Below, piece after piece: positions 7,901 through 10,900 of a stretch of 64,000 nucleotides of DNA. Origin of the DNA: Podarcis melisellensis. Lineage: Eukaryota. Position numbers and translations under genes: made by a program. The stretch is taken from assembly GCA_964234715.1 (NCBI GenBank), contig OZ174276.1; one strand, written 5' to 3'. Under the pieces are notes generated by a model, which searched no databases, was not told the DNA's origin, and saw only the letters and a program-made list of their open reading frames with translations. Each line of letters opens with the position of its first letter. Position 1 is the first letter of the stretch.

Positions 7901-10900
7901 CAACCCAGTGGGCATAACGGCTCAGGGTCCAGCAGGCAATGGAGCGCACTAGGGCCTTCTTGTCAGAGAGACATTGGATCAAGTGGGGAATCAGTTCAGG
8001 GAGGTAGGGAACCATGCCCTGCATGCAGCCTAGAAATGCAAGAAAATACATTCAGCATACTTTCTAGGCATATCAAAGGGCTGCCAAATTCTTGTTCACC
8101 TGAAGTTGCTGCCAATGCCTTCCCCTTTTTGCAAATGCAAACCCCTAGTTTAAGTGATACAATTATAGAACTCACCTTCAGCAATGGCCCCTAGAACGAG
8201 GATTCCGGACTCCTTGATGACCCACTCGGGGTGGAAGAGTAGCCCCTTGAGCAGCGGGAGCAGGTGTGGGAGGAGCTCATCTCTGAAGACATTGGCCAAG
8301 ACATCGAGGGCTGCAGCGGAGCATTTTCCTGTAGGAGACACAGGGCTATGTAGTAGAATCTGCACAAAGTACCAGTGGGAAAGCTCTGGTCCACGAGCCA
8401 AATTAGGCCCATAAGGTCTCTCAATTTGTGCCTTATTGTTCCTTTGCAGTCCTGAACTTGCGCTGTTTATGTTTGGGGCTGAATATAAGCCTCACTGCTT
8501 TGGGGCACAATTGGCTCCACTCAGGAGCTCCCAGCTGGATTTCATTCCTCCTTATGCCACAGATGGTCATAAGGCAGAGGTGACTGACAAATCTGGTGTG
8601 TGGAGCCTTGGCTGCTATTTGATCCCGCTCTTCAGCATAAAGTGACTCCCTATGCATTGCACAGAGTAAACTCTTTGGGAACAATGAGTCTTTTAGGGAA
8701 GAGACAAGCAGGAAAAAAGCACTCGCTTTAGGATAAACATCCAAGGCAGAAAGTATCTTTTAGGGGTAAGAAAACCCCAAGCTGTCAATTCCAGCAACTC
8801 TATTAAACAAGAACTATCTTTTTAACAAGAAATAAAATTGGACCATTGAATAAGCTCCTTCGGTGTATATCTTCTTCCCACATAAGAGTCAGAATCAGGC
8901 CAAAGGGACAGTGGCCAACCAGATGCTTGAGGACAGTCTACAAGCAGGACATAAGTACAACACTTTGCCCACCTGCGATTCCCAGGAATCGCTATTCAGA
9001 GGCACTTGCCCCATACCATCACAAATGAAAAGGAATGGTATCAAGTCAGTTATGTGCCCAGTGCTCCCCTCTACTAGCTCCTGGCACCCTCATAGTTGGC
9101 ACTTTCCCATCTCAAAAGCACTGCACAACTCTTCCCCTACTCACTCAGATTCCAGTCAGATAGCGTGTCATCGTCGTCATCCTCATCCTCTCCATCTTCA
9201 TCATCCTGTAGCCGTTCCTCCTCATGCTGCAGGGTAACCGTGCGGGATTTGTGGAAACGAGGCTTGATATCCTGCTCACTGTCAGGGATGGCTTCATCCT
9301 CTTCCACATCACCCTGAAATTGAGTAGAGGGAGCACATGGAAGCCCTTTTAATACTGAGTCTCGTCTTCCAGGGAAATGAGCTCTTGCAAAACAGTACAA
9401 TATTTCTTGTTCTTGGTGGGATAGATTGTTACTTAATGCCAAAATAAACCCTGGCAAAGAACGGTAACCCTCCAGTCTTCTTGGGACTCTTCACCTCATG
9501 CATCCATGGATCAGACAGGACGAATACAACAACCCATCACAGTTGTCAGGCTGAAGGTTATGCATCATTTCCAAGAATGCATGTGCTTGGCCACTGACTT
9601 GGGAGGGTGCAAGCATGTATGAATTTCGCTTGAAAAGTGAGACTGGCCCTGACTTATACTAAATGGGGCAAAACATAGTTAAGTCACCAGGGGGTTTTTG
9701 CAGCCAAGAAACTCAGAAAAAGTGTTTTAACTCAGCTGATCAAGCCCATAACCCTAGTCTGTAATCTTAGGAAGAACTTTTCTTATAAAGACATAGCTAT
9801 TCAGTTAGCATATAGGTGCGGCTCATGATGGAACTTGCAGGGGTTCCAGTGAAAGCCCCCAGCACCACAGACCCAGCTTCAGTAGAACAGAAGTAGTACA
9901 TTTAAAATGCCAACTACATATGAAGGGGATGGGCAGTCTCTCAGTATGCTCAATTTTAGGAATAGGACAAGGAATAATTTACAGCCTTATGGAATGAGGC
10001 TCCTCAACTATCAGAACTGAAAGGGCAAAGTTTCCTTGTTGTGGAAGGTTTGCCAACCATACTGCCATGCACTGTGCCTGTAAGGATGGTCAGCAGCAAG
10101 AGTGGGGTAAAGATGAATGAGATTCTAGATGTTACAACACAGAACCCTTTTCATTTGTTATGCTCAGTAAAGAGGCTGCGGCTGAGGAATGTAAAACCCA
10201 GAAGGTGGAAATATATATTATATTAAATTCTAAGTCAGAAACAAATACCTTTAACAATATGATGTCAATTTCAGAATACTTCATTCCATTCACCAAAATT
10301 GGAATCAATCTGTTAAGGAGAAGGAGAAGAAAAAGTGATTCACCAACTGGGTCCTGGGGCAAGAATGACATACACCACAGTAGGTGCTGAAGTTAATCAT
10401 TGCCAAATAGGAGCAGTAATGTCATTGTGCACGTGGAGGTGGAATTTCAGTAGCTTCTGTTCAGATAATGCCCCCTACAATACAGATTTCCCTGCAGCAA
10501 GCGTTTACACACTGCTTAGTGTAAGTGCCACTACTGCTTGATAGAAAAGTCCAGCAGTAATTTATAAGGTTGTGGCTAGCACAAAATGCTATTCTCTGCT
10601 GCCAAGTTGTAAAGAGAAACAGGTACTCTGGGCACGCAACAAGTATGCACAGCAACTCCATAGCAGCCACCTTTCCCTTGAACTCTTCCATTTTAAAAAT
10701 CCCTTTCTGTCCCAACTCCAAATGCTCAGTCATACTGCACGTATCTGGCAATTCTCCCCAACTTTGCAGTAATGATGAACAGCAGAAAAAACAGAATTGA
10801 AGGAATGCTGAAGGGCTCCACACCTCTAACTTGGAAGAGCCCTGTACTAGATTCACTAGATAGACTATAAGCATATATACTTAAAATATGAAAGTAAAAA

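Follow-up and report, generated by a model that had tools for sequence, protein, structure and literature searches.

Results

SNORD41-type RNA genes in introns of TNPO2

The window analysed here is a 64,000-nt stretch of Podarcis melisellensis DNA (contig OZ174276.1). Flanking minus-strand open reading frames (ORFs) yield transportin-2-type peptides for which homologous exon ORFs were found, one of them named transportin-2 by JGI, and IBN_N and HEAT_EZ domains lie on neighbouring ORFs of a related contig (L001); the identification of the gene as TNPO2 rests on exons searched singly. TNPO2 is usually held to be a housekeeping gene. A protein word search with the intron-derived part of the acidic-loop ORF gave no match. 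Two introns of the gene each hold a SNORD41-type box C/D RNA, called here the upstream and the downstream copy. The upstream copy occupies the intron just ahead of the acidic-loop exon, and the downstream copy sits two introns 3′ of it, between the CMQGMVPY...EAAC exon and the next exon; outside the boxes and the guide the two sequences have little in common. The initial annotation had placed a second U41-type C/D RNA in a TNPO2 intron, and both the SNORD41 match and the transportin-2-type exons bear this out. The features, all on the minus strand, are as follows.

7337..7407 (−): downstream SNORD41-type copy with an intact guide and A at +5 (plus-strand t7350); Rfam SNORD41, 48.8 bits
9146..9313 (−): TNPO2 acidic-loop exon GDVEEDE...SDWNL, starting about 180 nt 3′ of the upstream copy; translated ORF and homologues
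9497..9583 (−): upstream SNORD41-type box C/D RNA gene, extended terminal stem included; sequence, Rfam SNORD41 and same-intron orthologues in L001–L009, L012 and L015
9571..9583 (−): terminal stem, 5′ half (outer 7 nt, 3-nt loop, inner 4 nt); fold, cofold and covariation
9562..9568 (−): box C, AUGAUGC (consensus RUGAUGA; seventh base C, not A); sequence
9550..9561 (−): D′ guide AUAACCUUCAGC, 12 nt; sequence, varying among relatives
9546..9549 (−): box D′, CUGA; invariant in 9/9 aligned upstream copies
9534..9540 (−): box C′, GUGAUGG; UGAUG core invariant in 9/9 aligned upstream copies
9515..9529 (−): D guide UUGUAUUCGUCCUGU, the SNORD41 family guide except at +5; sequence, Rfam and alignment
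9519 (−): D+5 base, an RNA C (plus-strand g); sequence, unchanged in organisms G and H, with A in all other upstream and downstream copies seen
9511..9514 (−): box D, CUGA; invariant in aligned upstream copies
9497..9510 (−): terminal stem, 3′ half; fold, cofold and covariation

A mature box C/D snoRNA is a stable processed RNA carrying fibrillarin, NOP56, NOP58 and SNU13, and D+5 is the guide position that selects the base to be methylated. The upstream RNA has the general build of this class: boxes C and D are joined by a 4 + 7 bp stem, and the internal boxes stand at guide-length spacings, with D′ 12 nt past box C and C′ 19 nt ahead of box D. The 11 bp of the stem fall into an inner 4 bp (9574–9571/9510–9507) and an outer 7 bp (9583–9577/9503–9497) on either side of a 3 × 3 loop, with a cofold energy of −19.3 kcal/mol compared with −16.1 kcal/mol for the stem of the downstream copy. 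Deviation from the box consensus amounts to a Hamming distance of 1 in box C and 0 in box D. All boxes and the flanking stem had been described as retained, and the internal boxes as closer to consensus than those of the downstream copy; both descriptions hold, the former with the one box C deviation and the latter in D′ (CUGA vs. UUGA) as well as in C′ (GUGAUGG vs. UGUGAUAG).

The window also encodes a third TNPO2-hosted box C/D RNA at 5456–5552 (−), with a 10-bp terminal stem (GAGCCCAGAA/TTCTGGGCTC), a box C of GUGAUGA and a box D of CUGA, for which no Rfam family match was found (best score 14.6 bits). Four bird-like contigs (L001 4700–4747, L002 3745–3792, L003 2836–2883 and L008 1500–1544) conserve its 5′ half, with the D′ guide core AGACAUUCGAAUC, at the corresponding intron, so this RNA, too, is old.

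The upstream copy and known SNORD41 families

A search with Rfam SNORD41 (RF00588), which had been proposed with the initial annotation, matched the upstream copy end to end (9506–9574(−), model positions 1–70) at 38.0 bits (E 5e-6, computed on a 401-nt stretch), below the gathering score of 41 bits, and all other families scored far lower on this stretch. The only above-threshold match in the whole 64-kb window is the downstream copy. Neither RNA reaches the gathering score of the SNORD41B/sno_ZL2 model (RF02724, 50 bits), which gives 14.0 bits (E 9.3) for the upstream copy and 21.9 bits for the downstream one. The upstream copy shares with SNORD41 its box C/D build, an intronic location in TNPO2, a D guide directed at 28S Um4276 and a match to the whole model, whereas it departs from the family in its sub-gathering score, in a box C ending in C and, above all, at D+5. 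When the family consensus guide is taken as a proxy for 28S complementarity, 13/14 guide positions are kept and the base that should pair with the target U is C instead of A.

Paired guides of this type have been described in mammals. SNORD41B was predicted by snoSeeker as a U41 isoform hosted by TNPO2; its guide for 28S-Um4276 is 14 nt long, and conservation extends to mouse, rat, dog and cow (PMC1636440). Kishore et al. recovered it as ZL2 (hg19 chr19:12814410-12814486), which lies downstream of SNORD41 (12817265-12817330) at a distance of 2.8 kb, and verified it on a northern blot; its level is given as about equal to that of SNORD41 and, in reads, as about twice as high (PMC4053766). A host gene with two guides for one 28S uridine is therefore an established arrangement. 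Like the upstream copy, SNORD41B/ZL2 is a U41-type guide that lies beside another in TNPO2, and the two have the ending ...UGUAUUCGU.CUGUCUGA in common; unlike it, SNORD41B/ZL2 has A at +5 in its Rfam consensus, and its model scores the upstream copy poorly, as given above. The positions also differ: in a mammal-like contig (L013, ~2150–2320), used only for measuring this one intron, with an acidic-loop peptide unlike the commonest mammalian form and not treated as human, the intron ahead of the acidic-loop exon is ~100 nt long and holds no snoRNA, which indicates that the sauropsid upstream copy has a position different from that of both mammalian copies. The text and supplements of a chicken snoRNA census (PMC2653536) contain no U41 or TNPO2 entry.

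Orthologues in bird-like and squamate-like contigs

Relatives were sought with the ORF containing the acidic-loop exon as query, and contigs were fetched for selected matches. The bird-like contigs L001–L009 have a GC content of 0.60–0.70 and very short introns. In all nine, a SNORD41 match lies in the intron ahead of the acidic-loop exon, scoring 42.5–51.3 bits in L001–L003 and L006–L009 and 33.5–35.8 bits in L004 and L005, and these upstream copies, with a box C of GUGAUGA, align box for box with that of the window. Where the contig extends far enough, a second SNORD41 match follows the CMQGMVPY exon (33.6–37.4 bits), and in L001, L002, L003 and L007 this downstream orthologue occupies the same intron and has the same CUCUGG/CCCAGAG stem as 7337–7407. 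Upstream and downstream bird-like copies all read ...UUCGUACUGUCUGA, that is, A at +5. A pattern scan of metagenome DNA added one contig of the same type as L008.

Three of the bird-like downstream copies (L001 4280–4348, L003 2450–2518 and L007 1210–1278) have G as the second base of box C (GGGAUGA), while guide, box D and stem are intact despite the sub-gathering scores; with scores below the gathering threshold, such copies would be missed by Rfam-based annotation. A bird-like metagenome contig, L010 (1–674), has no upstream copy within its 674 nt, and its intron is filled by a C-rich short repeat with CCCCA/CCCAT-like units. The fish-like tnpo2 locus (L014) has no SNORD41 match in 15.8 kb; it carries, at 2103–2249 and 10029–10175, an UnaL2 LINE 3′ element (52.5 and 60.5 bits) behind a tRNA-like head, and this two-copy arrangement has the layout of a tRNA-derived SINE.

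Two further contigs, L012 and L015, are AT-rich and squamate-like, and their acidic-loop peptides match that of the window exactly or almost so (L015 has two extra aspartates). Their exon identity to the window is 88.6% and 84.5%, respectively, and the flanking intron is unalignable. The comparison with these contigs covers the upstream copy, which lies at 629–697 in L012 (48.1 bits) and 627–695 in L015 (44.1 bits), above the SNORD41 threshold in both; the two copies have a box C of GUGAUGC, A at +5 and a common G-to-A change at +7.

By position and sequence, then, the upstream and downstream copies are both old positional orthologues, found in the same two TNPO2 introns in bird-like contigs, and the initial description of the upstream RNA as a paralog of a "canonical" downstream copy does not fit, in that it is no young side copy. 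Given that the bird-like, L012 and L015 copies all have A at +5, the C is a derived state of the window's lineage.

The +5 C in three related species

Contigs from four sequencing runs were compared with the intron stretch 9340–10130. Runs of the window's own species (organism A) contain all sampled words of the stretch. Organism G is represented by a DNA contig of 2092 nt that covers the whole of 9340–10130 with 15 differences, none of them at 9519; two lie inside the upstream element, one in the D′ guide (9560, its position 11) and one in the stem loop (9575). Organism H is represented by two contigs from different studies, both unchanged at 9519: the first has 0 changes in 9497–9583 against 11 differences over 316 nt overall, and the second, a 191-nt contig centred on the upstream element (9428–9618), has one change, at 9530. 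The +5 C is thus common to at least three species (A, G and H), which are ~2–3.5% divergent in this intron, and its presence in contigs of two other species shows that it is no assembly error. The sole D-guide difference had initially been placed exactly at D+5 (g9519, C vs. A); it does lie there, and at least three related species have the C as a fixed base. Conservation of the C across the orthologous intron had been named as a check; the C is kept in G and H, and the squamate-like and bird-like contigs have A.

Two length differences were seen elsewhere in the intron. An organism H contig skips 53 nt (10045–10097) with GT..AG ends, and organisms G and H both have GAAA after 10018; each is probably an ordinary between-species indel, the latter implying a 4-nt deletion in the window's species.

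There is weak evidence that the upstream copy is expressed as a mature RNA. The small run behind the 191-nt organism H contig is RNA by guess only, and a second such run covers most of the intron, whereas in a run search no run on record as RNA contained the upstream sequence. That search result, together with the sub-gathering score and the final C of box C, would suit a silent pseudogene from which no stable RNA is made. The same final C, however, is present in L012 and L015, whose copies pass the threshold, the stem is stronger than that of the downstream copy, and the 191-nt contig is itself centred on the element, so that we consider silence very unlikely. Hallmarks of non-expressed snoRNA paralogues are several mutations in the boxes, a terminal stem that pairs weakly and a host gene that is silent (PMC12309372). 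The upstream copy resembles such pseudogenes as a duplicate member of a guide family with a function-relevant mutation, and differs from them in its single box C deviation, its perfect box D, its strong stem (C box distance 1, D box distance 0) and a host usually classed as housekeeping. Judged by box, stem and host criteria (PMC12309372), it still looks like an expressed snoRNA.

Guides and their possible targets

Compared with the family guide, the D guide differs only at +5 in the window, only at +7 in L012, and at +7 and +13 in L015. In an archaeal system, a mismatch at position 5 and at positions 3–4 cuts methylation markedly but incompletely, and mismatches at farther positions have no effect (PMC1635284). 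By extension from that system, the long-kept A at +7 is probably harmless and the C at +5 probably is not. An upstream copy that still works as a weaker Um4276 guide, its C-U mismatch at +5 being partly tolerated, would be in keeping with the long remaining duplex and with the significant yet incomplete drop caused by a position-5 mismatch in an archaeal hemi-complex, but the wild-type archaeal complex is reported to be sensitive at position 5 (PMC1635284), and we regard such partial activity as unlikely.

Retargeting would require the +5 C to pick a G in an RNA containing 5′-CAGGACGAAUACA-3′. The base change itself speaks for it and nothing further does: the guide is otherwise that for Um4276, which would require a second site just one base away from the 28S sequence, and across the 64-kb window nothing matches except the antisense strand of the gene. 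A new target of this kind is extremely improbable.

The initial annotation had also offered the possibility that the RNA is maintained for its D′ guide, with a target of 5′-GCUGAAGGUUAU-3′. The consensus-like D′ and C′ boxes, and a D′ guide identical at 11/12 positions between the window and L015 (position 2 differs), could be taken in its favour; yet 3/12 positions differ in L012, including that guide's own +5, position 11 differs in organism G, and the bird-like D′ guide is a different one that is one base longer. Such variation makes a conserved D′ target unlikely and contradicts that proposal, and the predicted target, like that of the D guide, was matched within the window only by the antisense strand of the gene itself. 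We consider a role for the D′ guide as the reason for keeping the RNA to be a remote prospect.

Constraint on the upstream element

In a blastn comparison of the window with L012, only the exon and an 85-nt segment over the snoRNA aligned. Over the full 87-nt element, a MAFFT alignment of the same two sequences gave differences at 16/87 positions, compared with 16/56 third codon positions of the neighbouring exon. Across the three AT-rich lineages (window, L012 and L015), D′, the C′ core and D are identical and box C differs only in its purine. The terminal stem covaries: among 14 pairs in nine upstream orthologues, 7 pairs are changed on both sides and 77% of cells are paired. At the last inner pair, the window and L012 have U-A, L015 has A-U, and the bird-like L001, L003 and L008 have C-G. 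Shuffles reached 7 double-change pairs in 1/500 trials and the observed paired cells and covariation score in 0/500, and slid registers all scored lower than the true one. On these comparisons the upstream copy is an old RNA gene under selection, a result that tells little of how long ago the +5 base changed.

Within the C-carrying clade the picture is flatter. Organism G has 2 changes in the 87 nt against 1.9% for the whole stretch, and organism H has 0–1 against ~3.5% in its contig; measured in this way, the upstream copy shows no clear excess conservation inside the clade and changes about as fast as its surroundings. The +5 change can be placed, from the sampled lineages, anywhere between the L012/L015 split and the ancestor of A, G and H, and with the change datable only to that interval the intact boxes are no argument for a decoy or chaperone.

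This bears directly on the possibility that the upstream snoRNP is a non-catalytic binder that docks on the 28S site without methylating it, serving either to chaperone the site or to compete there and so lower the Um4276 stoichiometry set by the downstream copy. With the family consensus as 28S proxy, the predicted pairing consists of 3 bp, one mismatch and then 9 bp plus a G-U, and the complementarity, which includes the 13 kept guide positions, reaches further 5′ than that of the downstream copy; intact boxes, a strong and covarying stem, and the position of the element as the sole alignable part of the intron between distant lineages would also fit. A neutral loss, however, would leave the same features in place for a while, the C-carrying clade lacks the excess conservation just discussed, and A at +5 in all other lineages points to ordinary guiding as the ancestral role. 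We therefore judge docking of this kind decidedly unlikely.

Discussion

We favour, with moderate confidence, the reading that the C at +5 is a derived and probably crippling change in a redundant guide, a nearly neutral loss tolerated through the intact downstream copy. Direct observations on the upstream copy, namely its anatomy, its orthology, the derived state of the C and the presence of that C in three species, are the starting point. The upstream copy would be the local orthologue of an old sauropsid SNORD41-type snoRNA in the TNPO2 intron before the acidic-loop exon, and ancestrally both copies would have guided 2′-O-methylation of one 28S uridine, which older human numbering calls Um4276. 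In the window's lineage, an A-to-C change at D+5 would then have placed a C opposite the target U, most likely cutting methylation guided by this copy strongly. The downstream twin, with A at +5 and a score above threshold, presumably still serves the site, which would make the change tolerable and allow it to be fixed as a nearly neutral loss. Given its boxes and strong stem, the upstream RNA probably still forms a snoRNP, and may bind 28S without methylating it.

Counted against a redundant loss is the fact that the upstream copy is a conserved island, with a covarying stem, in an intron that is otherwise unalignable across squamate-like lineages. If the C were old on its branch, the RNA would have been kept despite it, which would argue for a remaining function. 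In the fullest form of that alternative, a dead SNORD41 copy is kept since its snoRNP docks on 28S and, together with an active twin from the same pre-mRNA, sets the methylation level or the folding there; we hold this to be improbable, and there is no sign so far that the two copies constitute a new regulatory device.

The upstream copy is a real feature of a known family in a known arrangement, to which one derived base change has been added, and the sauropsid pair of TNPO2 snoRNAs occupies positions that do not simply match those of the mammalian SNORD41/SNORD41B pair. If the loss is merely tolerated, the locus would be a small, clean example of duplicated snoRNA guides starting to decay, and a caution that a description of "all boxes intact" is no proof of function. 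If instead the upstream RNA is truly kept despite its dead guide base, it would lend itself to testing, in a natural setting, non-catalytic snoRNP binding and the tuning of partial rRNA methylation, with related species carrying A or C at +5 as ready-made controls.
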